From: Phaeosaccion multiseriatum
Taxonomy: Eukaryota > Protista > Ochrophyta, other classes
Direction of reading: 5' to 3'
NCBI GenBank assembly: GCA_965112735.1
Contig: OZ218952.1
Coordinates: forward strand, 4,526,001-4,590,000
Length of the DNA: 64,000 nucleotides
The notes beneath the pieces are model-generated. The model saw only the letters and a program-made list of their open reading frames with translations, did no database searches and had not been told where the DNA came from. The stretch's first letter is position 1. Every line of letters starts with the position of its first letter. Made by a program: the position numbers and the translations under genes. Shown one piece after another: positions 10,301-57,157 of this stretch.

Positions 10301-12591
10301 TATCTTCTACCTCATCCCCCATCTCTCTCTCTGCCTCCTCCGAGTCTTCATTCGCCGACCCTCCTTCGTCCATCGCTGATGGGACCTCCGCATCCGCATC
10401 TGCTTCCACCACTTGCTCGCCGCCGCTGCCGTCACCTTCACCCTCCTCGTCCTTAGTGGTCGCCGAAGCCTCAACCACCGCTTCTTCCGCCTTTGTCGTG
10501 TCCTCACTGAGCCCCACTCTCTTGACGCTCGCAGCAGCACCAGCCTTCAGGGGCAAACCCACACTACCCACTGGTGGTTCGTTGTCCTTTCCGACCTCAT
10601 TCTCCTCCTTCTCCTCGCCCCCCTCCCCCTCCTCCTTCGCAGACTTCAACGATCCCACCTCCTCTTCCCGAGTCTCGTCTTTCCCCTTCTCCTCCTTCCC
10701 ATCCTTCTCCTCCTCACCTCCCTCCCCCTCCTTGACCTCACTCCTCTCCTCCTCCTCCTCTTCCTCCAACACCAAATCCTGCATCTTACCCCTCGTCTTC
10801 TTCTCCATTGGTGTAGGCAAAGGACGCTTGTGGCCCTTCCTACCGCCACCGCTGCTACTGCTACCCGTACGCCCACGCTCTTCCTCTTCGTCTCCTCCTC
10901 GCAGCAAAGAGCTACTCGACGAAGCCCTCTTGGGTCTAGGTGAGGAGGAAGACGAAGAGGAGGGGGTGCCTTCTCCTCCTCCTTCTCCTCCTTCTCCTCC
11001 TCCTCCTCCTCCTGTGCCTGTCTGCTGAAGAACTTGTTGCCTTTGCCGCTGCATGAATCGATCGGACTCCATGCTGGGTTGGAAGCGTGCCACGCTCTTT
11101 CTCTGGCGCCCGTGCACTCCTCCTCCTCCTCCTGCTGCTGCTGCTGCTGCTGCACCACCACTACCACCATCTGCGCCTTCTACCGCTAGTGCCTTTGTCT
11201 CCTGGCTGGGGGTCCGCGGTGTGCCGGCGGAGTGCTTCTTCCGCCCTTCTCGGGGTTCTCGGGGGGTGTACTTGCCCTCTGTCTGCCCGGCGTACCCCTC
11301 CTTCTCAGCGCCTGCTGTGGGGAGCTTGATCGATAGTTTCTTCCCCCCGTCCCCGCTGCTTTTTTGACCGGGTGCGGCCGCGTGTGGGCTCTTTGGCCGC
11401 TGCTTCTCAGTCTGCTGCGTGATGTCCTCTCCTTTGCCCTCATCCTTCTCTTCCTGCTGATCCTGCTCCTCTCCTTCCTCCTCCTTATTCTTCTGCTGCT
11501 GGCGGATCAGCTCTTCCTTCGACTCAGTGCCCATGTTCTTGTCGTCCGCCCCCTGCCCAACCGCCAAGCCTTGCGTCTGAGGCACATCCGTGGCCGAACC
11601 TCGCTCCTCCGTCCCTGGCCCACCCCCCCCCTTCAAGGCCTCTGCTCCCTCCTTCGCTCTAGTTCCTCCTCCGTCGTTCTCGGCGCCGGCCTTGAGACTC
11701 TTCTTCGTGGATTTTGATGTGCCTTTTCCCTCAACAGCTGCTGCTGCTGCCGCCGGCTCTTCCGGCCGACTCTTGGCCCCCTTCCCCAGCTCCTCGTCCT
11801 CCTCCTTCTTTTTCTTCTTCTTCTTTTTCTTCTTCTTCTTCTCCTCCTTCCGCAGTTCCGACTCTTGCTCTCGGCCCTTCCTTTCCCTATCGCCGGTGGA
11901 TTCTTTTGGACTCGTCTCCACAGCCTCTTCATCGTCGCCTATACATGTCTTCTCTTTCCTGTGCCCCTCCTGCCCTTGTTCCTGCTCTTGCTGCTGCTCC
12001 TCCTCCTCCTCCTCCTCCTCCTCCTCCTTCTTCTTCTCCCATCCCTTTCGCCCCCGCGTCCCGTCCCTACCCTCTTGGTCGTCTCGTTGATAGCCGCCCA
12101 TGTGCCCTCCTTCCGAGCCCTCACGCCCAGCAGCTTCGCGAGCTGATGGTCCTTTCCCTCCTCCTACGCCAACCTCCTCGTCACGCGTCAGCTCCACCTC
12201 ACGGCCTCCAGGCACACCTTCGTCCTTTCTACTCGGACCCATCTCCCCTTCCCCACCTGTCACTGCTATATTCGCATCCTTCTTTGCTTGTTCTTCCTCT
12301 TCTTTTCCGTCTCGTTTCTCCTCATTCTCTTGTCCCTCCTTCTCCTTCTCCTGATTCCTGCCCTCGTTGCCCATTCCTTCCTTTCCCTTCTCCAAGCTCT
12401 CTTGTTTTACCCCCTCCGACCCACCCTTCCCTGCCTCATGTCCTTTCTGACTCCCTTCGTCCAGTTCCACCGGGGTCACCTCCCCTTTCGAGCTCCTCCT
12501 CCTCTTCTTCCCCTTCTTCCCTCCACCTGCTACCGTGCCGCTGCCCTCCTTCTGCAATCCTTTCGAACATGATGATGATGATGATGATGAC

Positions 12592-12623
<32 letters not shown>

Positions 12624-15336
12624 CCCTTGGGAGGATACTGACCCGCGTCGCACAGCCGCGTGGCCGTCCTTGTCCTTGTCCTCGTCTTTGTTGCCTGACT
12701 CTTGTGCTGTAGCAACCACACCACGGCCACTGCCCTCCCCAGCCCCGTGTGATTCCCGTTTCTCTCCGGGCCTCTCCTCTGGGGCTTTGGCTGCTGAAGC
12801 TTCTTCTTCTCCACCCGCCCCTCCATCTTCACCTTTTTCAGTAGGGAATAATCCGCCCTTCTCCTTCTCCTGAGAGGCAAGAGACCGAGGTGCGGCTCCA
12901 TGTCCCTCCTTCTCGCCCTTGCGTTCCCCATCAGCCCCTTTCGCGGTTGCGGTTGCATCTCTGACGACAAGTGCAGGAGGAAGCTCTGCGCCAGCCTTCC
13001 CGGCGTGCGGCTGCTCTCGAGGCTGGGTAGTAGACGGGGGGGGTGCCTTCTCCTTCTCTCTCTCAGCACGACCACCGCCTCCACCACCACCTCCTCCTCC
13101 TCCTCCTCCTGACGTTGGTGGCGCTGCTGCTTTGGAGTCGTCAGCACCACTCGTCGCTGCAGCAGCACTTGGAGCAGCGCGAGCCGCGGACCTCTCCTGT
13201 GGAGGACCCTTGCCCTCAGCAACAGGAGGAGAGCACGAGCGGGGGCTCGAGGACGCCGATCCAGAGGATGTGGAGGAGCTCTTACTGCTCACAGAGGAGG
13301 TCGTTGGGTTGCCACGCCCCTTCCCTTCGCCGCTCTTGTCACTGTCTAATGCAGGAGCACTATTCTCTCTCTCGACAGGCCCAGCGTGTGTAGGAGTGTC
13401 TTTGCATCGGAAAGAGCCTTCCCTCTCTCCATCGCCGAGCAACGAGTGGTGCTTTCCGTCCGCCATCATGCGCGGCGATCGAGGCGAATAGGGAGAGTTC
13501 CCTACCCCTACACCCCTCTCGGAATCCGCCTCTGCGGTGCCTCCTCCTGAAGTGCTCCGCCGCTTGATGGGTGAGAGGGGTCCCTTGGGCGAGCGGGGAC
13601 CCTTGGGAACAGACACAATCCCCAGAGTGCGGTCGTCCATCTCCGCCTCTGACTCGCCTTCCCCTTCTTCCTCCTCGACAGCGCTCATCTTCCCACCCCT
13701 CTTCTGCTGCTGCTGTCCCCGCTGCTGCTGTCCCCGCTGCTGCTGCTGGCTAGAGGCTGTAGACGACGACTCTGAGTTTGAATTGTGGTGGGAACGGAAC
13801 AACGACAAAACAGGGGGGGGGGGGTGACAACACACAAATTGAGCAGTTGGTCAGTGCTCTGATTGAAATCCTGAAGGGTAAAACCAAATGGCACTTTCTC
13901 GTCTTCGCTCTCTGTCCAGCCCCGCCCATTCCATCCCCTCTTTTCCTCTTGCAGCCTCAGCCGTCCTCCCCAACTCCTCACCTACTGAGCCTGAGCCGGC
14001 TTTCCTCCGCTTGTTCCCTTCGTCGCTGGTGTTTTCCTCGCTGAAAACACTCTCGCTCCTTCCCCGCTTCTTGCCTCCGTTCCCGCCCCCCCTTCCCCTG
14101 CTTCCGTCTGAGCAAATCACCACATCCGCGTCAGGAACCTTGGTGTACTCTTCTGTTCCATCGTCGTAAGAGATGAGTACCACGCTCCTGTTGAGCGCAA
14201 ACACAGGGGCCGAAGAGAGTGAAAGGGACAAAGGGCGCGGCAGGAAGTGAGAGGGGGAACGGGGGGGGGGGGGGAGATACCCACCCATCTAACTAAGAAA
14301 AGAGAGCAAGTGGCATTTCAAACAAGTCGACCCCTCTCGAAGCAACAGCGCACTCTTACCCTGCCTCGTTGTAGTCTGCCACAGTGCCTCCGTACCACTT
14401 GCCCCCGTCAAACCTGACCCTCACGCGACACCCGTTGGAGGGAGGATACTGCGCTTGGATAGTCGCAGGAGAAGGGGGGTGTGTATCCCGTGTTTGCTGC
14501 TGCTCGTCTTCATCAGAGTCCCCAGATTCGTCGTCGTCCTCCTCATCTTCATCACCCTCTTCCTCCTCCTCGTCGTCCTCCTCCTCTTCATCTTCTTCTT
14601 CGTAGGATTCGTCATGCTCTGCATCGCCGTCTTCCTCGTCCTCCTCTTCGTCTTCCCCCTGCTCCTTTGAGCGCTGGCTCCCCCCTTTCCGCTCCTCCTC
14701 CCTCCTCTGCTTCTTGATCCTCTTTCTCTTTTCCTCCTCGCTTTCCTCTTCATCCCGGATTCGACTAGCCCCCTTCTGCCTCCCTCCGTTTGCAAGCTTG
14801 TGGCTCGACCCGTTATGAAGACCCGAATCACTTCCCTTTCTCGCCCCCGCCTCCCCTTTCGACCCAGACCCTCCGCCTTTCCCCCCCCACGGCCGTCCCC
14901 GCTTCGAAGCGCCCCCATCGCCGCTGTCCTCCGCACTCTTCCCTCTCGCCCTGTTCCACACACCTCCCTCGCCATCCTCTCCGTCGTCCCCCCCTTCCCT
15001 GGCCTTGCCCATCCTCCCATGGTGCTGAGACTTGGGACTGCCCCGCCTCCCGCTGCCGTGCCCGTGTGGGTCTCGGTGCTTCCTGTACTCAGACGACTTG
15101 ACCCTCCCCATGGAGCCATCCCTACTACTACTCCTCTCCTTGTCCCGGTGATGATGGCCTTCCCTCCCCCCGTGCGGAGGCTGCGGCTGCTGCGGATGGC
15201 CTGTCGAAGAGGCAGCGGGTAGCCGACCTTCCAACACCGCCTTCCCACCGCTGCTGCTGCCTCCGCTGCCGCTGCCGCTGCCCACGCCGCTGGCCCCGGC
15301 CATGGACGCCGCCAAGGCCCTCCTCAGCGACGTCAT
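7323..15336 (-). CDS. Large (~2500 aa) low-complexity chromatin protein with an N-terminal Tudor-like domain and three CW-type zinc fingers
   Basis: Exons ~15336-14360, 14187-13982, 13771-7323 with matching splice phases. Three CW motifs (WVQCDKCDKWRRLP..WVC..C; WVQCEHKSCQKWRRVP..WYC..C; WVQCDRKHCKKWRKLP..WYC..C). The Tudor-like RVRVRFDGGKWYGGTV..ISYDDGTEE spans intron 1. Confidence 0.88.
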
Positions 15337-39830: not shown

Positions 39831-39997
39831 CCGGCCCCTGACAAGGTTCTGAGGCGACCCAGGTTCTGGCCGGCGCCAGCCGGCCAGGTTCCAGGTTCTG
39901 GGGGAAAGCCATGTAATAAGGCAATGATGAGGGCCAAGGCTGCTCTGCCAAGCTTCGCCAGCGGGCGGCTTGGGTCGCCTCAGAACCTTGTCAGGGG
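39831..39997. mobile_element. MITE-like element A (27-bp perfect inverted repeats, eroded ends)
   Basis: CCCCTGACAAGGTTCTGAGGCGACCCA at 39835-39861 is inverted at 39971-39997. Internal AGGTTCY repeats and CCGGCGCCAGCCGG. No clear TSD. Confidence 0.75.
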
Positions 39998-40133
39998 AGG
40001 GGAAGATAAGAGGAATTATTGACTTAGGAAGCAAGTACGCAAGCGCCTTGAAAATATGAGTTGAAGATATTGGCCTACCTTCCACTTTCGCAGTGCAGGG
40101 TTTCTCGGCTGTGTGCGCCTTGCGTGCCTCATA

Positions 40134-42610
40134 ATGGTTCAGGCATGGGTGGTCGCCTCCATTGTGGCCATTTCTTGTGTCCATAGTCCCCTTACGGAAG
40201 GCTTCCTCAGTGGGGGGGGGCTGGTCCCGATGGGAAAGGGACACGGAGTTCAACCCCCGCCCGCAGTCGGGGTCAGCACGGCCGCCTCGAGGACCCACGG
40301 GTCTCTGGCGCCTCTGACCCTCAGCACTGGGAGGAAGGAGGGCACTGGGATGGTGCGCTCGCGCCTCCAAATGTCCACACGTGACCAGGAGGAGAGGCTG
40401 GAACTCAGAGGGGCGCCAGAGTTCGACGGAGCGGAGGTTGCCCGAGAAGTTGTCGCTGGAGTGGGCACGGCCTTCCTGCTGGCCGGCAAAGGCGTTGAGG
40501 GCTTGTTTTCGGTGGGGACCGCTCTCAAAGACCGCTTCTACGACACCGTCTCTGCCGTGTCTGCCACGGAGAAGCAGCAACAACTGTACGACGAGTGTGT
40601 GTGTGAGTGTGATGAAGCCGCTGCTTCGTCCTCGCTACTGGGGAGGTTCAACATCCAGCTGCCTTCTATGGTCACGTTAGCGGTCGCTTTGAAAGATGGG
40701 GCCTATGACTTCTTTGAGAGCATCGAGGAGAGAGGGAAAGCAGCAAGGTACTCTGGAACATACGTGTACGCTGACGAGGAGGAGAAGAAGAAGCCTCAGG
40801 ATGTTGCTGGGGAGATCGTGAGAGCCATCTCCGATAGCAGTGCGGCTGCCCAACAGGGTAAGGGGCGTTGCTTTTCTGCAACTCTGAAGTGAATCACTGG
40901 CGCCCTTGCTATTGCTGTTCCTAAGCTCTTCCTTTTCCCTTTCTCATGTAACCTCCTCTGCCCCCAACCCAACCCAATCCAACCCTGGCCCCCTTGTACC
41001 ACGGTACAGCGTCGTACGTCGCTGTGGAGAAAGTTGAATCGGCGGTGCAGGCCGTGCGGGATGCGCCCAAGCGTGTCACAGAAGCAGCCGAGAGCCTGAA
41101 GCACACGGCGGAGGAGATTGTCGACTTGCCCAACAAGGTCACCAACGAGGCGACCACTCTCTTCCAAGCAACGGCGAATAAAGTGGAAGAGTCCAAGCTC
41201 TTTGCTGTCCAGTCCGTGGCTACCCTGCAGGAGACTGCAAGCAAGGTGGCCTTCGTGGCGAGCGGGCAGTGGTGGAAGGAGAGGCAGGCCAGAGAGGCGG
41301 AGAAGAGGGCCATGGAGGCACTGGCCAGGGCCCAGCAACTGGAAGCGCGCGAGGCCTTCCTGGACTCGGCCAAGACGGTGACCACCACGGCTGTGGACCT
41401 CACCGGCAAGGCTGTTGTGGGCCTCGCGACAGTGGCCAAGGGCGCTGTGACCCTTCCCGACAGCCCCCTTCGAGCTGCACTGGCGCCCCTCTTCCAGGAC
41501 CGGGTTCGGAAGCAGGCTCAGCTGGGGCCGGGGCGGGCGAAAATGGCGGCACCAGTCGGAGGAAGACAGGAGGCTGAGAAGGGTAAGATGCAGAGCATGT
41601 CAGTGGCGCAGCAGCAGCAGCAGCAGCAGGAGAAGGGGGCAGAAGGCGGCACGGTTCAGAGCATGTCATTGGTGCAGCAGCAGGAGAAGGAGAGTGTGGC
41701 TTTGGGAGCGGGAGTTGAGCAGGCACAGAAGGAAGCTCAAGCCCCTGCAAAGGCGGTAACGCAGCGGGAGACCGACGCTTTGCAGACAAGAGTCCTGATG
41801 GCGCAACAGAAGAAGGCGGCACAGGAGGCTGAGGCGCTCAATGTAAGAGCCCTAACGGCCGAAAGGAAGGCTCGGGACGATGCACAGGTGCAACAGGAGG
41901 CGAAGGCTTTGCAGGCAAGAGGGATACTGGCGAGGAAGAAGGCTCAGGACGATGCAAGAATGAAGCAGGAGGCAAAGGCTTTGGAGGCACGAACCCTACT
42001 GGCGCAAAAGAAGGCTCAGGAGGATGCAGTAAAGCAGGAGGCGAAGGCTTTGAAGGCAAGAGTCCTAATGGCGGAGCAGAAGGCTCAGGACGATGCGAGA
42101 GTGAGGCAGGAGGCCGAGGATCTGCAGGCAAGAGTGCGCCTGGCACAGGAGAAGGCTCGGGTGACAGAGGAGCGGGAGGCCGAGGATCTGCAGGCAAGAG
42201 TGCTACTGGCGCAGGAGAAGGCTCGAGCGAGGAACGAGCAGGAGGCCGAGGACTTGCAGGCACTGGTCCTGCAGACACACGCGAAAGCTCGGGCCGATAC
42301 CGCCGCAGTGGAGGACGCAGAGGCTGCGCAAGAGAGGATCCGACAGCAGCAAGCCAACGCTGCAACGCTGACGGATGTCGACATATCGCTGCCACCGCCA
42401 CCGTCGGCGACGAGAACAAGGAGAATCGCCTTTCCCTTCTTGGGCATGGGGGGAGGGGCAACTGTCATCACAGAAGCGGGCAAAGAAGAAAGCGGCGAGG
42501 AGGGGGTGACCACTGTAGGAGGGATCCGGGTTGTGGCGGGGGGGGACACGTGGGTTGGGGGCAGGACGGTTGGCGGAAGAGCACCGAGGAAGAAGAGATG
42601 GAGGGCATAG
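40134..42610 (+). CDS. Putative plastid-targeted coiled-coil protein with ~7 tandem 22-24 aa repeats
   Basis: Exons ~40134-40857 and 41010-42610. Signal peptide ending TEG-FL, then a Ser/Thr/Arg-rich transit-like region, an LEA-like helical region and EAxxLxARxLLAxxKAxDD repeats. Confidence 0.7.
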
Positions 42611-42620
42611 ACCCCTGCTG

Positions 42621-42807
42621 TCGGCCCTGGAAGAGGTTATCAGATTACTGATTACGGCCGGCGCAGCCGGCCTGATTACTGATTATGGCGCCAGCCGGGC
42701 CTGATTACTGATTATGGCCGGCGCCAGCCGGGTCTGATTACTGATTATGACCGGCGCCAGCTGGCCTGATTACTGACGGCGCACACTGTAACCTCTTCCA
42801 GGGCCGA
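42621..42807. mobile_element. MITE-like element B (19-bp TIR, 6-bp TSD CTGCTG)
   Basis: TCGGCCCTGGAAGAGGTTA 42621-42639, inverse at 42789-42807. CTGCTG at 42615-42620 and 42808-42813. Internal array of TGATTAC-TGATTAT + GC spacer. Confidence 0.92.
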
Positions 42808-43065
42808 CTGCTGTTCCTGTCAGATTTGTATTTTAGTTATTTATTCTTTTAGCCCTCTGTGTGTACGGCTCCCCCACACACTCACTCCTGGTAATTAATT
42901 TTTTATTTTGTCGTGTTTGCTCTTCGTCACGCCGCCGAAGGCACAGCCCTTAGCACGTGTTTTTTGAACATATGCTTCACACAGCTTTACTTTTACGCAG
43001 CGCGGATGGCACTGGATGTGCATCTGTTGGTCTCTCTCCTCTCTATCCTTCCCCATCTCCTTCTC

Positions 43066-43959
43066 ATGTGGTGGTGCTCCTTGGTCGTGTGCACTTTGCT
43101 GCTGTGCCTCCTCCCTCGGCTTGACGCCTTCGCCCTCCATGTGTACTGCAATGCAAAGACCCGGCCCACCACGACCTCACTTGGAGCTACGTCCTCTCGC
43201 CGATCCTTCCTTACAGAAGCCCCTACTTTGCTGTCGCTTGGGGTAGCCTCTGCAGCAATTGTTGGGGGGGGCTCAAGCGCTGTGGCGGGCAATGGGAGCC
43301 CAGGGCAGTGGGAGCCCACTGGGCCTCGATCTGAGGCAACGTCCTACTTCCCCACCATTGAAAAGGGTTACGCCGTCCTAAAAGGTGCGAACGCATTCTT
43401 GTAGAGAACAACGAGGCAGTCGACTCAAGAGGGGGGGAGAGGTCCATGTACTGACGGTAGCTGTGAGGTGAAGGGAAGCAAACTCTCTCACATCCTCTTT
43501 TCGTCCTTGCGTGTGTGTTCGTGTGTTCCTACAATTCATCCCTCACTCTTCTCATCGATCAGACTTAGACCAGAACTGGGACGAAGTTACCAAGAAGCCG
43601 TCTGCAGGAGACGATGTCCGTCGTGTCTTGGGGACAGTGGGCAACTCGAGCCCGCTGAGCTATTTCAAGAAGGCCTCTGCGGGCATTAGAGACGCAGCAG
43701 TCATCCCTGTGAGTGCACCCCTGTTTGCTGCCAGCCAGAGTGGTAGATTTATCCTTTCAAGAAGTACATGCGGTGCATGCTTACTACGAAGAAAGAGCCA
43801 CCACTATTCATCGTTTCTACCGGGCTGAGGAGTCCCTTTGCTGCGCATTCGAACATTCGAACAGGCTCTTCGCTTACTCCCCTCTCGCTATTCGTGCAAC
43901 CACCACCCATTCCTGCCTACAGTAGCTCACCTCAATCTCTGTGTTGCTGTCCTGCTGCA

Positions 43960-43991
<32 letters not shown>

Positions 43992-44456
43992 ACCCCAGGC
44001 CGAGCTTGACGTGATCGACTTTGCGGAGAAGAGCGAGGAGGTCATCACCGAGCTGGTGGATGCAGATAACGACGCATACAGTAGCAACTTTGCTGAGTTC
44101 AGTGCCGGCGCTGTCTCTGCCAAGATCTTCCTTGACAAGGCAAGAAAGTCCGTCAAGGTAAGTGAGGAGAAGTGAGGAAAATTATTTTGAGAATAGGAAG
44201 CAGGGAGATGCGTGACAGCGGAGCACAGCATCCGTCGGTCCACTATAGGACTGTAGCGAAATTGCCCATCGCCCTCGATTCTATCTCTCCCTCTCTCTCT
44301 TGATGTCTACCATTTCTGCATCTCTCGAGTCCGACGACCCCCACAACCCACTCCCTTCTTTCTCGTTCCTTCCACCCCCCCATTTGACGCCTTCCACCAC
44401 AGAGTGCCCTCCGCCTGTACAAGGAGCTGATGCAGATCATGGGGAAGCAAACCTAG
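43066..44456 (+). CDS. Thylakoid lumen protein (PsbQ-like/TL16.5-like helical bundle), Tat-targeted
   Basis: Four exons. Signal peptide (..PRLDA-F), twin-Arg SSRRSFL + hydrophobic + AVA; mature LDQNWD..GDDVRRVLGTVG..SPL. The family call is from memory. Confidence 0.75.
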
Positions 44457-44473
44457 CCACGTACTACAGCCCA

Positions 44474-44711
44474 TCGGCTCCCCGCAGGGCTTCTCGAGCC
44501 CCCCGATAAGCAGAAGCCTGAGGCGGCCTGCGGCCGAAAGCAAGAAGCCCGGGGCTGGCCTGCGGCCAGAAGCCTGCATAATCTCTCCCCCCCCCCCTGA
44601 GCGCCCCTGAGAAGCCTGAAGCCCAGACCGCTGGCCTGCGGCGCAGAAGCCCGAAGCCTGAGGGGGCTATGGCCCAGAAGCCTGGAGCCCGAGAAGCCCT
44701 GCGGGAGCCGA
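44474..44711. mobile_element. MITE-like element C (~25-bp TIR, 6-bp TSD AGCCCA)
   Basis: TCGGCTCCC(C)GCAGGGCTTCTCG at 44474, inverse ending at 44711. AGCCCA at 44468-44473 and 44712-44717. Internal AGAAGCC doublets. Confidence 0.92.
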
Positions 44712-44937
44712 AGCCCATAGATAGATCCGTATGTATATAAAGGATATCTATAAAGTATCCCAACACTAAAAAGGACAATGTGCACCACACCTGAGGTGCT
44801 CTTGAGAATGCGTGTTTCCCACTTCTCCTGAGGCTTGAGGGCGAATTTTCAAACGAACCTGTCGGCAGATGTGAAAGACACAGAAAAAGAAAAAAATATG
44901 GCATTCGGGCGTTGGGTGCCATCGAGCACAAAGGTAA

Positions 44938-46644
44938 AGAGGGAAGGGGGGGGGGAAGGAGGGAGGGTACCGAGCAGAGAGAGACGGCGACCTGCCTGCT
45001 CCCACCGGAAGGAGGTGGAGGGCACAGGGCGGAGAGCCCTTGCTTGCAGCGCACCAATGGCGCGTGTATTGTGCCAAGACGGCTCGAAAGGCAAAGCACG
45101 CTTCCAGTGATGCTGCAGTCATGGCTGGGTGGGATGAGGTGAAGTACCGGCTGTGGAAGTTGTTGCCTTACTGCTGCTCATTCTCCTCTCACTCTTTCCT
45201 CCTCCCCTCCCCTCCCTCCCCTCTTATCCGAGTAGTGGCGCCGCGTCAACCCTTCTTGGCTGGGGCCGTGTTTCCATTACTCTTCGCGGTGTTCTTCACC
45301 AAGTTTGGCAGTTTCATCTTCTTCCTCATCCTTCAGTCGGTGGTGTTTTCACTCATGCCCTTCTCTGCCTACCTGGCCGCCTTTGGACCAGCCAGAGCAG
45401 CGATGGGGAGTAAGGCAGCGGGCAAGAAGGTCAGCTAGTAGCACAAGTGAAGAGGCGAGAGAGAGAAAGCGAGAGAGACAAGAGTAGTAACGAAGAAGAC
45501 AAGCAAGGGAGAGAGAAGAACGCGGATGAGAACGAGAGCGAGCGAAGTGTCCCGGGTCGCCCCTTCCTCGCCCATCTCTCCTGCCCCGCCGCCCCTGACT
45601 TGCTTACGCCGCTACCTGCCTCCTCATGCCAATCCACGCGCCAAGCAACTTGTACCACCCTCTTCACACTTAATCACTCACTCTTGCTTCCCTCTCTCTC
45701 TCTCTCTCTCCCTCTCTTTCTCTCTCCCTCTCTCTGTCCGTCTGTCTGTCCGTCGCTCCATGTGCCACTCTGTCTATCACTACACACACTCACACACTCT
45801 GCAGGGCAAGCTTGTGCACGTGCGGCGGCCGAAGCCCTCCTCCGACGGCAGCGACTTGGACGAAACGTCGATCCTTCACAACTCCTCCTCTGCCAGCCGT
45901 TTGAGGGACCGTAGCAGCCAGCAGCAACGCCAAGGACAAGGAAAAGGTCACTACAGCCGTGTCCACACCCAGCCATGCACGTCGTCGGAGGTGAGGAGGA
46001 GGAGCAGAAAGTCGGTAGTAGGGATGCGGAGAAGACGCAGGGCCAGCCCACAGCGGGAAGCCCCACTCCTCGACCTTCATTTCGCTGGCTCGTGTGATTG
46101 AGCCCGTGGCCGAGACTGACGGCAACAGCAAGCACGTGCGTGTTCAGCTGCTTCATCACAAAGAGCTGGAGAGGGGCGGGATGATGGAGGGTTTGGGGAC
46201 TGTCCTCACGGTGTCACGTGACGACCTCCGGCTCGCACACAGCCCCGGTACCATCACCTTTTTGGGGGCCCTGTGCAATTATTTGCCTTCTTGCCTGCTT
46301 GGCCTGGCTGCTGCTGCTGGCTGCGCCAGCCAGTCGACCCCTGACACGCTATCCGCTATCCCGGCGCCAGCCGGTGCGCTATCCGCTATCGCCGGCGCCA
46401 GCCGGCTTTGGGGGGGGGGTTGTGGGGGCGTGCTATCCGCTGTTGCCGGCGCCAGCCGATCCGCTATCCGCTATCGGCCGGCGCCAGCCGGCGCGCTATC
46501 GAGAAAGTGGGCGATAGCGTGTCAGGGGTCGAGCCAGGTGCAAGAACAATGCGGCCGTCGATGACCTGGCTGCTCCTTCGCAGTAGGTAGCTACGGCCAT
46601 CGATGACGTGGCTACTCCTTCCCATTAGGCAGGGAGTGTGTCAA
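44938..46644 (+). pseudogene. Degenerate duplicate of the 3' end (last two exons, intron parts, 3' flank) of the Dispatched-like gene at 53331-54826
   Basis: Colinear high identity with 53331-54826, with indels/frameshifts and a MITE insertion (46334-46532) that is absent from the downstream copy. Confidence 0.9.
46334..46532. mobile_element. MITE-like element D (20-bp TIR, GCCAG/AGCCAG flanking duplication)
   Basis: TCGACCCCTGACACGCTATC / GATAGCGTGTCAGGGGTCGA. Internal CGCTATC-CGCTATC + CCGGCGCCAGCCGG. The empty site is visible in the paralogous copy (~54670-54685). Confidence 0.93.
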
Positions 46645-46698
46645 GCAAGCAAAGGGAACACAGAGACGGCCGCCCATTTTGTTTTTTTCCCTCTTTTT

Positions 46699-46812
46699 TC
46701 GACCCCTGACGTGCTACCTGCACCTGCTACCGCCGGTGTTATACAGCTGACGTGCTACATGCTACCACCGGCGCCAGCCGCCGCGCTACCTGCTACGGCG
46801 GCCAGCTACACC
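46699..46812 (+). mobile_element. Solo left end E of the same TIR element group
   Basis: TCGACCCCTGACGTGCTACC followed by TGCTAC(C) repeats and CCGGCGCCAGCCG. No nearby right TIR. Confidence 0.7.
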
Positions 46813-47105
46813 GAGACTTGAAGGGGCGGGCAATTTTTTCGCGGGAAATTTTTTCAGGGGACCTCAAACAGTTTTCTGTCCGTCGCTCGGCCGGTGTTGG
46901 CGCCGCCTTCCTACCCCCGGCCAGTTTTCAGGCAAACCGACTGCCCGAAAGCACGTTCATCCATACTTCATCTCCTTTAACGTTATCACGAACTTTCCGT
47001 ACGCTCCTGCTGTAAGAAGTAGCTTCTTCACTTAGTCTAAGAAAGTTTTGTTACAAAGAGCGACAGCCTGCGGGGGAAGCCATCCTCGCCTTCCGTCGGC
47101 TAAAA

Positions 47106-50100
47106 ATGGCCAAGAAAGAGGTCATACTAGGCGAGGGGGGTGCGTACTTTTATGACGAGGAGGAGGAAGGGGAGGAGGAGTGCTGCTTCGATCCTTTCTG
47201 CACCATCCCGATCACCGTGAAGAAGCCGTGTGGCACCTGCTGCTGCCTATGCAGCATGATGATTTTCGTCCTCGTCGCCATTGGTGGGCTCCTCGCGGCC
47301 GGCGTGGACATTATTCGCTTCTCGAACGATGTGCCTTTCTACTGGTATGAGCACGAGACATACAAGGCCGAAGTGGCGCTGCGGTCGGCCAAGGACACGG
47401 CGAACTTTCGCCTTGGGGGGAGGTTTCGTGAGCGAGAGTTCGCCGACACGTAAGTAAAGATATCATCCTCTCTCCCTTCCCTTGTTGTTGGCCCCTCCCT
47501 GTCAGCCCCCCTTCCTCTCTCGACTCGACTCGGCTCCCTCCCCTTCCCTGCCTGGCTGCTGCCTGAGCCCTGCTGTCCTTCCTTCCTTGTGTCTGGTGTC
47601 TGGCTGCCTGGCTGACTTGGCTGTGGCCTGCTTCCCCTCAGCGACTTCGCTCTGTGGATGGTCTACGAGCTGGACGAGGACGGCACCTTCGACGACACTC
47701 TTTTGGAGCCCTCCATACTCATGGGCATTCGAGACCTCGAGGCCACCCTGCAACGCTCCCCCTCCTTCACCACCTTCTGTGCATTGACGTACGACTTTGA
47801 CGATTCCAATCCCATTTGTCTTCGGCCCAGCTCGGTCATTAACATCATGGACCCGGCCTTCTTCATACCTGCCGGAGACAGCACCGCTGCTTCGTCTCCC
47901 ACGGTGGCCAGTGTAGAGAACCGGAACGTGGTTCTTGCTTCCCTCGTCGCGGCTGGGTTCGACGAGTCTACGGTGCAGCAATCAGAGTTTTACATTTACG
48001 GCGATCCTTACGATGCTGAGATGGAGATGGACGAGAGCTTCCTCGAGAGTGCCAACGTGGCCGCCATCACTGAGTACTGGGCAAAATACTGCTCCTCTGC
48101 AGATGGCAACGGGTGCACCGCGGGGGTCAGCAACACAGACACCACGCCCTTTGCCCTGACTTTCCAGGATACCAATATAACTGTACCCAACCTTCTCTCC
48201 CCCCGGGTGCAAGGCTCGTTTGGGACAGTGGATGGAGACGGGAATTTGGAGCAGAGAGTCAGGGCAATGACCAGTGTGCTCTCCTTCGGCTCACCGCAAG
48301 TGAGGGACGAGAGCACGGGGGAGCTTTACGAAACCGACACCTCAGGAAGGGAGGACATGATCGACAATCTCGGGAAGTTCCTGTTCGATACGTATCACGG
48401 TGAGGTTCAGTTTCGGCCTCTTCCTTCCTTCCTACACCCCTTGCTTGAATTCCTCCCCTTGACTTCTTAGCATTCCCCTTCCTCTCTCTCCCCCTCTCGC
48501 TCTCTCTCTCTCTCTCTCTCCCTCTCGTCGCTCTCTCTCTCCCAGATTTGCTCAGCGACTATCGCATACCTGGCGTCAACATCTTCTGGACAGGTGGGTG
48601 CGTGGCTAGATTGTTGAGACTGGCTGAGTATCTTCAGAGGAGCAGCCAAACCTAGTCCGCCTGTTGCAGATGGGGCTTTGTTGACCAGCCACTCAGGAGG
48701 ACTCCGTGACTTACTATGATTTACGACACAGGCAACAACAACGGCATGGAGGCAGAGTACACAGCAGAGGTGCAAGCGAGGGACACGGGCCTCATCGTGG
48801 GCAGTTTCATCTTAATAGCGTTGTTCCTCATGTGGCAGCTTCGCTCGTGGTTCTTGGGATTGCTGGCGTTCCTCCTCATTCTCGGCAATTTTGGGCCCGC
48901 CATCGTACTGTATCGCATTTTGTTCGGCTCCGCCTACTTCGGTGAGTGAGTCAGTGCGTGCGTGCGTGCGTGCTTGCGTGCGTGCCTGCGTGCGTGCGTG
49001 CGTGCGTGCGTGCGTACATGATGTGATATGGTATGATGTGAGTGAGTGGTTGGGTGACTGACCGACTCAGTGGCTGATTGATTGACTGGCTGAGACTGAA
49101 TTTCCTTCCTGCCTGCCTGCCTGCCTGCCTCCCTTTCTTCCTTCCTTCCTTCCTTCCTTCCTTCCTTCCTTCCTTCCTTCTTTCCTTTCTTCGTTCCTTC
49201 CTTTCTTCCTTCCTTTCTTTCTTCCTTCCTTCCTTCCTTCCTTCCTTCCTTCCTTCCTTCCTTCCTTCCTTCCTTTCTTCCTTCCTTCCATTCTTCCTTT
49301 CTTCCTTCCTTTCGTTGCTTCCTTCCTTCCTCATCATACGCACAGGTACGCTGAACCTTTTAGCGGTATTCATTCTCCTGGGGGTTGGAGCCGATGACGT
49401 CTTCCTCTTCGCCAACACTTGGAACGAAATGCGTAACCATGCGAGCTATGGAGACAGCGTCACCCACCAGCTTCGCCACACCCTGCGCCGGGGAGGTAAG
49501 GCCATGGCAGTTACTTCTCTGACCACCATGGTGGCCTTCCTGACGAACGCCACAAGCAGCTTTCCGGCTATTCAGAGCTTTGGAATCTTCGCGGCCATGT
49601 TGATCTTCGTCAACTTTTGTAGCGTGGTGACCACGTACCCTGCGGTGAGTGAGTGAGGGAGGGAGGGAGGTAGTGAGTGTGCGTGTGGGTGCGTGAGTGA
49701 GTGAGTGAGTGAATGAGGCGAGTGAGTGAGGGAATAGCTAAGTGCGTGCGTGAGTGAGTGGGGGTAATAAGTAAATGAGTCAGTTGAGTCAGTGAGTGAG
49801 CAAGTCAAGTAAGTGATTGTGTTACGATATAAGGCATCCCAATATGCCTTCAGTACTATCCAAACGTTTGGATAGTACTGAAGGCATATTGGGATGCCTT
49901 ATATCGTAACAAAAGAGGGGTTCGGATGCCTTATATCGTAACAGATTGAGAGAGCACTCAAGTACTTACCTCCATCCCTCCCTCCCTCCCTCCCTCGCCC
50001 CCTCCCTCCCTCATCCCCTCCATCGCCCCCTCCCTCCCTCCTTCCCTCCCTCCCTCCCCGCTCCATCTCTTCCTCCCCCCACTCCCAAGGGGATGATGGT

Positions 50101-53100
50101 CTACGAGTACTACATCAATGACCCCAAGAGGCTTGAGCTTAAGAGGGAGACGAGGACGGCAAGAAGGCGAGCGGGAGGAGGAAGAGGAGGAAGGCTCGGC
50201 TCCATCCTCTCGGGCTGTATCGGCCGCGCCACCGACATCTGCCAGTGCTGTACCAAGAAGCCGCGGGGGTACGCACCTCAGCCGATGAGGGACGCCGCGG
50301 AAGCAGCAGAGGTCCAGAAGCCAGCCACGGAAGTGTTCTTCCGCGAGAAGTACTTCCCCTTCCTCAATAGGGCCAAGTACATAATGCTGGCTGTGTTTGC
50401 TGCCATCTTTGTGCTCTACTGCGTGTGCACCTCCTTCCTCGTGCCCGACCCGGACGCTCCCACGCTCCTTCCGGACAGTGACCAATACATTCAATCCGTC
50501 GACAAGCTGCAGGAATACTTTGCCAACGCAGACGACATCCGAACCATCGTCCAAGTCCCCTTTGGACTCCTCGGTGTGGACAGGGGTGACTGCGATGGGA
50601 GCAAGTGTGATCCCACTCTCCTTCAGGATCTTGGTGCCCCGGTGTGGGACGAGGCGGCGTTTACGATGGAGGCGGTTGCCGATGTCAACGCTCAGCACTG
50701 GATGCTGGACTTCTGCGCCGCCCTTGCTTCGGACGCAGCACCAGAAAGTGAGTGAGGGACGGAGGGAGGGAGAGAAGGAGGGACGGGGGGAGAGAGGGAG
50801 CGCGTGAGTATGTTCGTGAGTGACTATGTGAGTGGAGAGAGTCTCACGTCGGCCCTCACAACTCTTTGTCTCTCGACTCTCTCTTTGTCTATTGGTTAGC
50901 TGCCCACGCACTCTTTCTTGCAGCCGCCAGTTGCTTGTTCCTCCGTCCTCAATTCTGTCACCCCCCTCCGCACCCCCTGTGGCACACACACACGCACAGC
51001 CAGTCACACACTGATCCTCTTGTCATGTCGACACCTCCTTCCCTTCCCTCCCCTTCTCTTCCCTTCCCCTCCTCTCCCTCCCCTCCCCTCCCCTCCCCTC
51101 CCTTCCCTTCCCCTTTCTGCCCTCCTCCCCCGTTCCCTCTCCAGATCTCCTCATCCAAGCGCCCTCTGACGCCGTGCCCGAGCCTGTCACGTGCCTCCAT
51201 ACGGGCTTCAAGACGTGGTGCGCAGCCAACTCCACCCGCTGCCCCCAAACGGACAGCACTCTGGCGGAGGAGGACTACATCATCGATGCTGACGCCTTTC
51301 CAGCTACGCTTCTCACCTATCTGGAGTCTGAGGTGGACCCTGGAGGCTCCTCACCCATCGGTTCAACTTATGCGGACGTCTATGTGGATAACATTCGGGT
51401 AAGATGGATGGTGTACCGCCAGGCCGGCTTGTTTGTCGTGCCGTGCCGTGCCTTGCGTTGCTTTGCCTTACATTGCCTCGTGCCCTGCTTGCCCTGCTGG
51501 CCCGGCTTGCCCGGCTTGCCCGGCTTGCCCTGCTTGCCCTGCTTGCCCTGCTTGCCCTGCTTGCCGTGCTTGCCCTGCTTGCCCTGCTTGCCCTACATAC
51601 GACGTCCGAGGGTGTGGGGGACGGGGGTGCGTTTGCTTCTGTCATTCCGTTCATTCCGTTTCTGTAGCTTTAGACATTGTCACACGAAAGTCATTCAGCA
51701 GCCGCAGCCACACGACAGCCATTCAGCAGCAGGCAGCCACATGGCGGCCTTGTGGTTGGTAGGTTGGCTTTGGCTGGTAGCGCTATGTCTACGTTGCGGA
51801 GCGAGTGCTGATTTCCCCCCATTCTCCTTGCTTCGTCTCGCTTTTCTCGAAACCACGACCCTCCCCTCCCGGGCACCCTGTGCTTGGTTGACCTGCCTCT
51901 CGCCTCTCGGCTGTCGCTTATCGCTTTTCGCTCTTTTACTTCTCTCCTTCCTTACCTCCTCCTCGCCCTGCTTCCTCTCTCCTACGATACGGTACCGTAA
52001 GGCGACAAGCGAGCTTGAGGTTCCCACACCTGAGAACCCTGCGACCCTGCGGTATATGGTGGTGGAGGTGCAACTTCAGACTGACTTTACGTACAACTTT
52101 GAGGATGGACAGGTCAGTCAGTCATTACCTGGTGTCAGTCAGTCAGGTCAGGCAGTGAGACAGACAGGCAGTCAGTCTGTCTGTCAGTCAGTCAGCCAGT
52201 CAATCAATCGATCAGGAAGGAAGGAAGGAAGGAAGGAAGGAAGGGAGGAAGGAAGGAAGGAAGGAAGGAAGGAAGGAAGGAAGGAAGGGAGGAAGGAGGA
52301 AGGAAGGAAGAAGGAAGGGAGGAAGGAAGGAACGAACCGAAGCAACGAAGCAACGCACGAGGGAAAGAAGGAGGGCAGTCAGTGAGTTCGTCAGTGAGGA
52401 AGTGAATCAGTCAGTGAGTCAGTCATTCAGTTCATCAGTCAGTCTATCAGCCAGCTAACCCTAAGCGCACGCACGCTCAGGATCTGTACAAAGCCTGGAA
52501 GGCCTACGTTGCGGAATGGGTGGATCGAGCAGCCACCGACACCGACGTGTACGGCACCGCCATCGGCCCGGTTTACGCATCTGGCTTCGTTGGCGACGAA
52601 TTGGCCTTCCACTACTTCTACTTGCAGGACAAGATCATCACCGAGGCGACCAACGGTATTCTCATCTCCCTCGCGGTGGCCTTTCTGATCATGTGTGTGG
52701 CCAACCATAATTGGATCATTTCCATGGTCGCGACGCTAACCATTGGGACCATGGTGCTCGGAGTGATGACCTTCACCGTGTTGGGGGGCTGGAAGTTGGG
52801 CATCATAGAGGCTGTGATCTACGTTATGGTGGTCGGCTTTTCAGGTGCGTGGCTTGCTTTTGCTGTCATATGTCGGTAGCATGCTGCTGGCCGCCGGCCG
52901 ATAGCACGTAGCAAGCCGCGCTGACGCCGGCTGGAAGCAGGTGGCACGTCAGGCGCCGATGAGTGGTCGGGTGTGGATCCGGGGATGGAGAGAGAGGGTC
53001 TGTACGGTGATGGTGGTGCGGTGCACTCAACGCTTCCTTTTGCGCTTTCCCTCGCTCTTCTTTCGCGCCGTACTGCTCACTCACTCACTCCCTTTACTCC

Positions 53101-54815: not shown

Positions 54816-57157
54816 AGTGTGTCAAAGGGTTGCAAAGCAAGATGCGATGAACAGCGAGGAGTCTATCGACGCACCGCCCGAGGACACTCCACGCTTACTG
54901 GAGGCCTACCCGCAGAACCATCAGGACAAGCAGCTAGTCAGCGCAGTCCGAGCCTATCTGCGCAATGTTGCGTCACGACAGGCAGCCAGCCAAGGCCACA
55001 CCGATAACATAAGTTGGAAAGCGTCGCCGACTGCGGCGGAAATTTTTTTGCCGCCGCTAAACCGTAGAAAGCGAAAAAACCGTACAAAGGCCTCTGAGTG
55101 GCTGAGAGAGGGCCTTAGGTCGTGTACAGTGTACAGTAGCAGAGAAGAAAGAAAAAAAATTGAATTTCAGTTTTTTTTGGCAGGGGCGGGAACCTTTATT
55201 TTCAAGAGGGTACAGGCGTCTAACTAAACCAAACAACGCATTCTCCGCGCGCGCCTACGTGCCTTTGCATGGGGACGGGCTTTGTCACTTGGTCTCCTGT
55301 GCCTCTTTCCTCCCTGACAGACCACAGCGGAGGTGACTTGGTCTCCAGTCATAGCCTACAGGATGTTGAGGGGGTTGCACTAGCGCATGGCCGCGATACC
55401 ACCCCACCAAGAGTTTTGCCAAGTCTTCGGCTTGATTCGGTCGGTCCCGACATGGTAGCAGCAGCAGCCAGAGGTCCACAGGAGCTGAAGCCAGTCTTAG
55501 ACGGGGATAAAGGCGAGAAGAGTGCCGAGTCTTCTCCAAGCCGCCTCGCGCTTGGTGTGGTAAGAAGAAAGGTATTCTTGGCTGTCTCGCGCGCCGCAAT
55601 GTATCATCGCGTTCTCAGTTCACAGGAAGGAGGGGGGGGGCTCTGGGTGGGCTCCAGGACCGAAGGCATGCCGGGCTGGTACTAGATAGTAAAGAGACCT
55701 CCAAGGGACCAGGATGATGGGGTCGAGGAGTGTGAATGGGCGGGTCAGAGAGCAGAAGGGAAAGCAGGCAAAGGGGGAAGTTAAGGAGGGCACCTTCTCT
55801 GCGGGTCGAAGCAAGGGGATTTGGGCGCTTTGCTGTGGGCTCTTTGGACCTAATTTGGACTGATGCAAGCATAATAGAGGCCTACACACACTCATACTGC
55901 AAGGACACTCATGGGGGGGGTGTACAGGGCCGTCTACAGTTTGTTTTTGCCCCGACGGTTTCTTCCGCCCGCCCGCGGCCGATTTTTTTACCATATGTGC
56001 GGCGCTTTCCAACTTATTTTATCGGTGTGGCCCAAGAAGCAGCGCGACAATCGCACCATTTGTTCGGCCCGCGCTCCGGCGCACACCGTGCCCACGCGCA
56101 AGAGGACAAACCCCGGATAGACACTTTTGCTTCAGAGTCGGACTGTCGCTTGGAGGTTTGCTTTGGTTGTCCTGCCTGAGGGTTTCCGGTCACACATTCT
56201 GGGGTATAGTAAGAATGTCGGTTTCCTAGGCACGACCCGAGGGGGCTTGCTTCTCTTTCCCCCCTCTCCAGTAGTAGCGATACTGTAAATAAAACGTAAA
56301 ACGCCCCTCCATAGGCACAGCATGTAGATAGTCCAAACCCCTCAGAGAAAAAGAACTGTTTTGTGCAGTGTAGTGGTTGGGCAGTGGGTTAGTTGGACGG
56401 TTGCTTGCGGTACTTACCCACTCGACGAGATGAGGGCAAGCGGATTTGACGCAAGGACGCACTTGCTTGCCTTTCTTGAGGGGACAGGCGCACAGCCAAT
56501 ACCATCCAGCGCTCTGTCTCCCTCTCTGTACAGAGTACAATCAGTGTACGTCTTTTTATTTCATTTAACGTTGTCCACAGCAATCAAGAGATCGATTCTG
56601 AATGCTTCCTTTTTTGGTGCGTCAACTCGAACAAGCCCATGAGTCAGACCCCTGCGCCAACAACAAATTCATGTGCAGGTCGTGGTGAAAACTTTCACTT
56701 GCTGCCGCTGCAGGAGGTGCGAGTTGACACATTGCCGTCGTGGCACCATGGGGCTGTGCAGCGTCTTGCGCCCGCGGCTCATGCAGGGGGGACAGAAGCG
56801 TAAATAGAGCCTTCGTTGCCTCCCGTCCCTCGGAACATCGTCGCAAAGACGGGCGAGGCTAGCGATCAACGATAAGTTGACACCCCCCAACCCCCCCCCC
56901 CCAATCAATGGAGCCCGAGGCTCGACGGAGTGCACGCGCCTGAGCGATGGAGCGCACACACCTGGATGGAGGGTTGACATGCCAGTGCTCTTGAAAGTGC
57001 TTGCCTCTTCGCTTGAAAGGCTGAGGGCTGCCCCCAAGAAAGCAGGCAGGCCAGCATCCAATAGGTCACCCTATTTGCAGTTGTTGCGGTGTTGGCGAGG
57101 CCTTACTTTCTTCGTAAGAGTCAGCCTGCTTGTTCGTCAGAGCCGTGTATCACTTCA

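Follow-up and report, generated by a model that had tools for sequence, protein, structure and literature searches.

MITEs with internal tandem repeats have been described before, among them Xmix and Xstir of Xenopus, pearl and CvA of bivalves, and the DINE elements with their central tandem repeats (PMC9659126). The elements described here, compared with these by their descriptions and not by reference sequences, are likewise small and non-autonomous and carry a short array between the terminal repeats, of the kind that expands by unit duplication. They differ in that the repeated unit is composite, consisting of a 7-mer doublet and a conserved GC hairpin, and that this hairpin is common to subfamilies with differing 7-mers. 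Also, no satellite expansion was seen outside the elements.

A second group of known systems are Ac/Ds, En/Spm and the P element, in which a transposase-binding word is repeated subterminally, scattered and in both orientations, near both ends. As in these transposons, a short word of the inner TIR recurs here several times inside the ends; unlike in these, the words form doublets of one orientation, which are spaced regularly by the conserved hairpin.

With regard to target-site duplications (TSDs), 3 bp are reported for EnSpm and 8 bp for the usual hAT elements (PMC12730594). TSDs of 6 bp are found in IS3EU, and TSDs of 5 and 6 bp were described for the lineages hAT5 and hAT6 (PMC12730594).

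Six inverted-repeat features in the window

The window, i.e. the whole 64-kb stretch of DNA that was analysed, belongs to the nuclear genome of an alga-like stramenopile. Six small, non-coding inverted-repeat features are located at 39.8-53.0 kb, namely the four complete elements A-D and the two lone ends E and E'. Each of them was recovered at the place given in the original prediction. The complete elements are 163-238 bp long with TIRs of 19-27 bp, and none of them contains a meaningful ORF, the translations being repeat-derived only. This anatomy is not random. If perfect, non-low-complexity arms of at least 16 bp that are 60-1500 bp apart are counted, the window contains six inverted pairs, while resampling with a first-order Markov model yields 0.02 on average and never more than 1. 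The six pairs are those of A-D plus two perfect pairs contributed by an unrelated element at 49820. Single-strand folding is stronger than in shuffled sequences for D (z = -3.8) and B (z = -6.9).

We consider A-D to be most probably MITE insertions of one family in a stramenopile nuclear genome, with E and E' as their decayed remnants. Their proposed nature as DNA transposons agrees with the lack of coding capacity and with the perfect 6-bp TSDs of two elements, which are the signature of cut-and-paste insertion. A DDE-type transposase encoded elsewhere would have moved them. Several observations speak against the MITE reading. The window holds only one copy per subfamily (two for E/E'), whereas multi-copy status is the usual proof of a family, and no further copies occur in the remainder of the window outside 39.8-53.0 kb. 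A TSD is missing at A and measures just 5 bp at D. Moreover, six features of differing subfamilies are found within at most 13.1 kb (P of about 0.002 for clustering by chance), where independent random insertion predicts otherwise.

The elements and their neighbouring genes

The features are situated among ordinary host genes in intergenic, 3'-flanking and intronic positions. Element A (39835-39997, + strand, 163 bp) has a perfect TIR of 27 bp (39835-39861 and 39971-39997, 27/27), no notable ORF and, as far as the flanks of the element show, no TSD. Its start had been set to 39831; as the CCGG at 39831-39834 is unpaired on the right arm, this boundary was corrected. The interior consists of a single spacer with copies of AGGTTCT on its flanks.

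Element B (42621-42807, + strand, 187 bp) is bounded by a perfect TIR of 19 bp (42621-42639 and 42789-42807, 19/19), which extends to about 23 bp if a 1-nt indel is crossed. A unit of 33 bp, made up of a TGATTAC doublet and the spacer, is repeated 4.3 times. Element C (44474-44711, + strand, 238 bp) shows 24 of 25 paired TIR positions with one indel, and its 7-mer GGCTTCT together with the reverse complement occurs eight times exactly. Both elements were predicted to have clean 6-bp TSDs, and in both cases perfect repeats (6/6) directly abut the TIRs: CTGCTG for B (42615-42620 and 42808-42813) and AGCCCA for C (44468-44473 and 44712-44717). The chance of each of these direct repeats is 1/4096.

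Element D (46334-46532, + strand, 199 bp) has a perfect TIR of 20 bp (46334-46353 and 46513-46532, 20/20) and contains four units of a CGCTATC doublet plus spacer, which are spaced by 31, 54 and 32 bp. The flanking duplication GCCAG has a length of 5 bp only (46329-46333 and 46533-46537). D sits in frame within an ORF at 46094-46564 (199 + 5 = 204 nt).

Between the inferred stop codon of the upstream gene (42608-42610) and the start of B lie 10 nt, between another one (44454-44456) and the start of C 17 nt, and D is located at the end of the last ORF of the next gene, all in a single run of same-strand genes. Together with the identical orientation of the spacer in A, B, D and E and the strong clustering, these positions would fit host cis-elements, that is hairpin or binding-site cassettes at gene ends with a role in transcript 3'-end formation, insulation or replication, for which the closeness to stop codons would be functional. 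We regard this as improbable. Perfect 6-bp direct repeats which abut TIRs that are perfect or, in C, nearly so are a signature of insertion and have no role in such a cassette, and E' is inverted and intronic. Gene ends elsewhere in the window, over 51 kb, do not have such a cassette, no match was obtained in Rfam at E values up to 1, and the gene models were inferred solely from ORFs. In practice, gene models and the annotation of 3' UTRs in this genome are affected by elements that lie less than 20 nt from a stop codon or, in frame, inside an ORF.

E (46699-46810, + strand, right boundary approximate) is represented by a left end only. Its terminus agrees with that of D in 12 of 13 positions, and the interior contains TGCTACC-type doublets as well as a single spacer (46768-46781) that deviates by 1 mismatch. 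Neither a right arm nor a TSD was found for E. E' (52883-52959, - strand, inner boundary approximate) is also an end only and belongs to the E subfamily, with 71% identity to E over 87 aligned columns. It is located in an intron of a Patched/SSD gene and has a degenerate spacer at 52917-52930 with 3 mismatches.

As E and E' are mutually inverted, agree in about 20 of the 23 bases at the terminus (read by eye) and carry the same type of 7-mer, they could be taken as the two ends of one element of 6.3 kb. That is very unlikely and was rejected: a flanking duplication is absent, and the interval comprises most but not all of the multi-exon Patched/SSD host gene, which runs through it and continues past E'.

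The intronic position of E' also bears on introners, i.e. MITEs made to be spliced from transcripts. Introners with TIRs and TSDs occur in stramenopiles (PMC11282704). The TIRs of A and B hold AG|GTT on the left side and a pyrimidine run followed by CAG|G on the right side. However, such sites are lacking from the TIRs of C and D, and all host donors read in the window have a purine at +3 (GTA or GTG), where A and B have GTT. None of A-D is an intron inside a coding exon; they are placed either outside the exons inferred to be coding or, in frame, inside an ORF, and 246 nt separate the end of E' from the intron acceptor. Due to splice-site quality and position, this explanation was rejected as well; there is hardly any probability left for it.

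Shared termini and spacer, differing 7-mers

Each element can be divided into the following parts. The terminal stretch of about 13 nt is common across the subfamilies and would be the part at which the transposase cleaves and positions itself, and the inner part of the TIR contains the 7-mer specific to the subfamily. The interior is a tandem array with a period of 31-33 bp (about three helical turns), each unit of which is composed of a 7-mer doublet and then a short GC hairpin palindrome; the remainder is filler sequence. Tandem Repeats Finder (TRF) arrays were obtained for B (33 bp, 4.3 copies), C (31 bp, 2.1 copies) and D (30-32 bp). These arrays may have grown by tandem duplication of the unit adjoining the TIR, and the repeated words and the spacer may act as additional binding or structural sites.

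The spacer CCGGCGCCAGCCGG is a GC sequence of 14 bp and itself a hairpin palindrome. With up to 1 mismatch it has eight matches in the window, as compared to 0.06 expected, all of them on the + strand and confined to A, B, D and E. The prediction of a GC spacer common to the elements was thus borne out, with 13-14 of 14 positions conserved in these four. C carries its own version, a separate GC hairpin (GGCCTGCGGC) in three copies, the first two of which are 32 bp apart. The 7-mers are indeed element-specific: with up to 1 mismatch allowed, the word of an element occurs 5-10 times within it, and that of any other element 0-1 times. The TIR 7-mers form two groups, A/B/C and D/E/E', and those of A and B agree in 6 of 7 positions. 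Between elements, terminus and spacer are kept significantly better than the 7-mer; A and D, for example, share 25 of 27 positions in terminus plus spacer and 2 of 7 in the 7-mer (p = 0.0014).

The copies are related. The termini of A, D, E and E' have 10-12 of 13 positions in common, and given these termini, the spacer of A, B, D and E and the array period, it is reasonable to speak of one family with subfamilies. The Repbase rule for a non-autonomous family asks for the same TSD length and for at most 1 mismatch in terminal positions 1-11 (PMC4455052). Over these positions D and E are identical (11/11), while D differs from A and from E' by 2 mismatches and from B by 3; C is over the limit, too. 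For A, B, C and E', a common origin is instead argued from spacer and layout.

It was proposed that the 7-mer of the TIR predicts the internal repeat. This does not hold for B, where the TIR has AGGTTAT and the interior TGATTAC, which resembles the TIR word solely as reverse complement (6/7, read by eye). The match between TIR and internal word is therefore not obligatory. A role of the 7-mer as an address for the transposase is conjectural. A tandem duplication of the TIR-adjacent unit would give the same match without any role in binding, and the shared modules, terminus and spacer, are at least equally good candidates for recognition by the transposase.

It is quite possible, at somewhat less than an even chance, that the 7-mers are no addresses and one transposase reads what all subfamilies share, i.e. 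the terminus of about 13 nt and possibly also the 14-bp spacer. The arrays would then be neutral minisatellites, formed in each lineage when the unit beside the left TIR was duplicated in tandem, which by itself causes the internal words to match that of the TIR. The first doublet of D overlaps the TIR itself, so that duplicating that unit yields the observed array, and D additionally holds a higher-order duplication of 85 bp. The spacer is identical (14/14) among A, B and D, yet the 7-mers are only 2-3/7 alike, and the internal word of B is unlike its TIR word. A single transposase for every copy is also more economical than four or five. On the other hand, the perfect symmetry of the TIRs goes beyond the shared 13 nt to 20-27 nt and includes the subfamily word, which is the expectation if this stretch is bound at both ends. 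Neither does neutral drift explain an intact spacer beside replaced words.

A more far-reaching proposal is that of an undescribed stramenopile lineage with three end modules, of which these elements would be the non-autonomous members. All subfamilies would have retained the cleavage terminus and the GC hairpin spacer, while the 7-mer doublets between these two were swapped blockwise and co-evolved with the DNA-binding specificity of several sister transposases. We regard it as doubtful. If true, the 7-mers would be natural 'swappable addresses' that stop related transposons from cross-mobilising one another.

Comparison with known superfamilies and searches for relatives

It had been argued that no known superfamily fits TSDs of 6 bp. 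That list was incomplete, as both IS3EU and hAT6 have 6 bp (PMC12730594). Of the original interpretation, the small TIR elements and the modular pattern are supported and a single family is reasonable; the exclusivity of the TSD length and, for B, the 7-mer rule are not supported. Like the elements B and C, IS3EU are TIR-bounded DNA transposons with 6-bp TSDs, but the fungal families, to which the comparison refers, have TIRs of more than 30 bp with TAYGG..CCRTA termini (PMC12730594), in contrast to the 19-27 bp and TCGG/TCGA found here. The 5- and 6-bp TSDs of hAT5 and hAT6 correspond to those of D (5 bp) and of B and C (6 bp); these two were, however, reported from an animal lineage of hAT (PMC12730594), and the present host is a stramenopile. 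Membership in hAT is defined by the transposase, which is absent from these elements, and 5-6 bp fits only the rare short-TSD lineages. PIF/Harbinger and EnSpm/CACTA do not fit, as they have 3-bp TSDs and EnSpm has CAC..GTG termini (PMC12730594), versus the 6-bp TSDs (B, C) and TCG termini of the present elements. The family may belong to an undescribed lineage.

Neither a transposase domain nor an autonomous partner was detected among the 35 ORFs or exons of this one window scanned against Pfam. The exons of the Patched-like gene were searched one at a time rather than joined. The translation of D in its open frame had no match in the protein collection, from which the species is absent, and the spacer and terminus strings had no relevant match in the full text of the literature. 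A 22.6-kb locus from Chrysoparadoxa australica contains no such termini, no spacer and no TIR of at least 13 bp. Of two scans of viral contigs one was without a match, and the other gave six chance matches in GC-rich phage contigs. A scan of metagenomes for two spacers 10-30 nt apart returned 39 contigs with a GC content of 0.64-0.76, save one at 0.32. These were rejected as relatives: all are unrelated tandem repeats in which the 14-mer occurs, and they lack both the 7-mer doublets and the termini described here.

The elements look like an ordinary kind, MITEs with internal arrays, in an unusually tidy modular layout. The catalogue of transposon families in stramenopile algae is poor, and a family with duplications of 5-6 bp and TCG-type termini would extend it. 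The layout has three tiers, with variable 7-mer doublets between a common terminus and a common hairpin spacer that recurs at about three helical turns. Should it hold throughout the genome, it would show in a compact natural case how one transposon family comes to diversify in the recognition of its ends, and would illustrate the birth of minisatellite arrays inside MITEs.

Among the host genes of the window is a Rad21 ORF, which has no identical record in the protein collection and the best homologues of which are from oomycetes, Chrysoparadoxa, Phaeothamnion and brown algae, with at most 54% identity among the top matches.

Terminal inverted repeats and flanking duplications

The window was scanned for inverted repeats whose arms match perfectly over 11 bp or more and lie 60-1500 bp apart. 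Four long pairs stood out, and these are the terminal inverted repeats (TIRs) of four complete small elements, designated A (39835-39997, 27 bp), B (42621-42807, 20 bp, including one extra G/C pair beyond the element), C (44474-44711, 16 bp) and D (46334-46532, 20 bp). The TIR of C grows from 16 perfect base pairs to 24/25 if one indel is allowed. Together with the two lone ends E (46699-46810, plus strand) and E' (52883-52959, minus strand) these positions agree with the original prediction, apart from the start of A. That start had been placed at 39831, but CCGG at 39831-39834 does not pair with the right arm. Six perfect inverted pairs of at least 16 bp are present in the window (those of A-D, and a further two that belong to an unrelated palindromic element starting at 49820), compared to a mean of 0.02 in first-order Markov resamples.

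The 6-bp target-site duplications (TSDs) claimed for B and C were found directly adjoining the arms, CTGCTG on both sides of B and AGCCCA on both sides of C. The flanking duplication of D, GCCAG, is only 5 bp long, and no duplication was found in the flanks of A. Insertion is marked by the 5-6 bp signature of a staggered cut. The set of MITE-like insertions is real and well-formed, and probably of recent age. Since the TIRs are far beyond chance, two TSDs are exact, and the elements are small, non-coding and situated in gene flanks or introns, A-D and E/E' are likely to be non-autonomous cut-and-paste DNA transposons (MITEs).

Modular conservation and the possible role of the seven-nucleotide words

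Each subfamily carries its own 7-nt word in the TIR. Doublets of this word, or in B of a different one, recur inside and are accompanied by a GC-rich spacer, which is a 14-bp sequence in A, B, D and E. A scan of the window for this spacer with at most one mismatch gave eight copies, all on the plus strand and all within A, B, D or E, where 0.06 were expected; its orientation is identical in these four. With up to three mismatches a further copy is seen on the minus strand in E', and another lies immediately to the left of D. This second one, an 11/14 match at 46320-46333, may be part of an older member of the family into or beside which D inserted, or it may be due to chance.

The spacer is a hairpin palindrome with a 5-bp GC stem around GCCA. 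Read by eye, longer stems are formed by two of the D copies (6 bp), the first B copy (7 bp) and the copy in A (9 bp). C has a different spacer of its own, a GC palindrome with a 4-6 bp stem around TGC. As this spacer is likewise palindromic, a short GC hairpin behind each doublet is common to all subfamilies, whether or not its sequence differs. Single-strand folding gave z = -3.8 for D and -6.9 for B relative to shuffles.

When the five words were counted in the six features, each feature had its own word 5-10 times and any other word once at most. By their TIR words the features fall into A/B/C on the one hand and D/E/E' on the other. Taken together, the terminal 13 nt and the spacer of A and D are identical at 25/27 positions, their 7-mers at 2/7 (Fisher p = 0.0014); the same contrast gives p = 0.014 for B/D and for B/E. 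Conservation between the elements is therefore modular. The rule that the word of the TIR is also the internal word does not hold for B, the TIR word of which is near that of A (6/7) while its internal word is different and resembles the B TIR weakly, in reverse complement. In A and D the internal words are oriented as in the left TIR, in C as in the right.

TRF reported arrays of 33 bp x 4.3 in B, 31 bp x 2.1 in C, and units of 30-32 bp with a higher-order 85-bp repeat in D; successive spacers are 31-33 bp apart. We infer from these arrays that they grew by unit duplication. Common terminus, spacer and array geometry indicate that the copies belong to one family with diverged subfamilies. The modular layout is that of a MITE with internal tandem arrays, a kind which has already been described (PMC9659126).

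A transposase encoded elsewhere would recognise the element ends. The 7-mer, proposed in the original prediction as the transposase-binding word, may be its address. In favour of this reading, the two arms mirror each other perfectly through the word of the subfamily and up to 20-27 nt, and a period of 31-33 bp would make all doublets face the same side of the helix. However, duplication of a TIR-adjacent unit would by itself yield the match between TIR and internal words, and B lacks that match. Terminus and spacer are the modules common to all copies, so that one transposase recognising those is the more economical model. Within the MITE reading, neutral arrays combined with recognition of the shared modules are a mechanism we consider quite possible, if tentative.

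Position relative to the host genes

The window (G+C about 58%) is eukaryotic nuclear DNA, and no part of it resembled human or viral sequence. Gene models were derived from ORFs and splice-like sites only. Host genes encode a Rad21/Rec8 cohesin, an LRR protein and a Patched/sterol-sensing-domain (SSD) protein, the homology of which was searched one exon at a time; further ORFs encode a RuvB-like TIP49, a DHHC palmitoyltransferase, a protein kinase, a TTL-domain protein (tubulin-tyrosine-ligase family) and a TatD-like protein. The closest relatives of the Rad21 ORF come from oomycetes, Chrysoparadoxa, Phaeothamnion and brown algae, with at most 54% identity among the top matches, which places the source among the stramenopiles; no identical record of this ORF was found in the protein collection searched. 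A single ORF of 2170 aa with three CW-type zinc fingers (zf-CW) occupies 7323-13835 on the minus strand, and GC and AT skew are strongly negative around it, over 8-16 kb.

Element A lies upstream of a plus-strand gene (ATG 40371), and B starts 10 nt past the stop codon of that gene (42608-42610). The same gene contains, at 41866-42262, about five 72-bp (24-codon) tandem repeats with a charged, coiled-coil-like product; it has no Pfam family. C starts 17 nt past the stop codon of the next gene (44454-44456). Insertion of B and C just behind the stops of two consecutive genes possibly reflects a preference for the start of the 3' flank, or chance (n = 2). D is located within 46094-46564, the putatively coding terminal ORF of a third gene, which has no Pfam match. 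Together with its 5-bp duplication D amounts to 204 stop-free nucleotides (68 codons), so that frame and stop codon of this ORF are unchanged.

E precedes the Patched/SSD gene (ATG 47106) by about 400 bp, and E' is situated in one of the introns of that gene. Both belong to the same subfamily and are mutually inverted. A single 6.3-kb element bounded by them was rejected; as no duplication flanks them and the host gene continues past E', they are two remnants. No further copies or fragments were found in the remaining 51 kb of the window, and the probability that six features cluster within 13.1 kb by chance is about 0.002. This clustering and the closeness to stop codons would suit host cis-elements instead of mobile ones, an explanation we regard as improbable because it leaves the flanking duplications unaccounted for. 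Even less credible are introner elements. Host introns in the window are short, microsatellite-rich and of the GT-AG type, and all host donors read here have a purine at +3, whereas the GT in A and B is followed by T at that position. The TIRs of C and D are without such splice sites, and the elements are not introns.

Relatives, superfamily and other miniature elements

Searches of metagenome contigs, viral contigs and a Chrysoparadoxa locus gave nothing or chance matches. The translated open frame of D had no relative in a protein search, nor did a literature string search reveal one. Rfam gave no match for the elements, and Pfam detected no transposase domain in 35 ORFs/exons of the window. 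Assignment to a superfamily would require a transposase.

The superfamilies said to be ruled out by a 6-bp TSD formed an incomplete list, from which IS3EU and hAT5/hAT6 were missing. TSDs of Polinton and Dada are also in the 6-7 bp range. IS3EU has 6-bp TSDs, and the hAT5 and hAT6 lineages have TSDs of 5 and 6 bp (PMC12730594). Fungal IS3EU families, the only ones compared, differ from the elements described here in their termini (TAYGG..CCRTA) and TIR length (more than 30 bp) (PMC12730594). Harbinger and EnSpm are excluded, their TSD being 3 bp. According to Repbase, non-autonomous elements are joined by equal TSD length and by termini with at most one mismatch at positions 1-11 (PMC4455052). 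This rule would join D and E only; A, B and C are tied in by spacer and layout.

An intron of the Patched/SSD gene contains the unrelated palindromic miniature element at 49820-49943, whose inverted repeat is perfect over 27 bp. The right arm of this repeat is partly duplicated (49885-49911, 49924-49943), and a 5-bp direct repeat, GATTG, flanks the element. Two introns of the same gene contain long microsatellites, (TTCC)n at 49102-49331 and (AGGA)n at 52214-52336, whose inverted arms of 96 nt are 90% complementary and 2.9 kb apart. A 1039-bp element at 54994-56032 has TIRs of about 30 bp (29/30) and a 3-bp flanking repeat, CAA, which fits the 3-bp TSD of Harbinger-type elements (PMC12730594). 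Its subterminal sequence at 55031-55060 and a sequence beside E (46826-46861) contain alike short motifs, GC-rich words around T6-T7 runs, possibly by coincidence.
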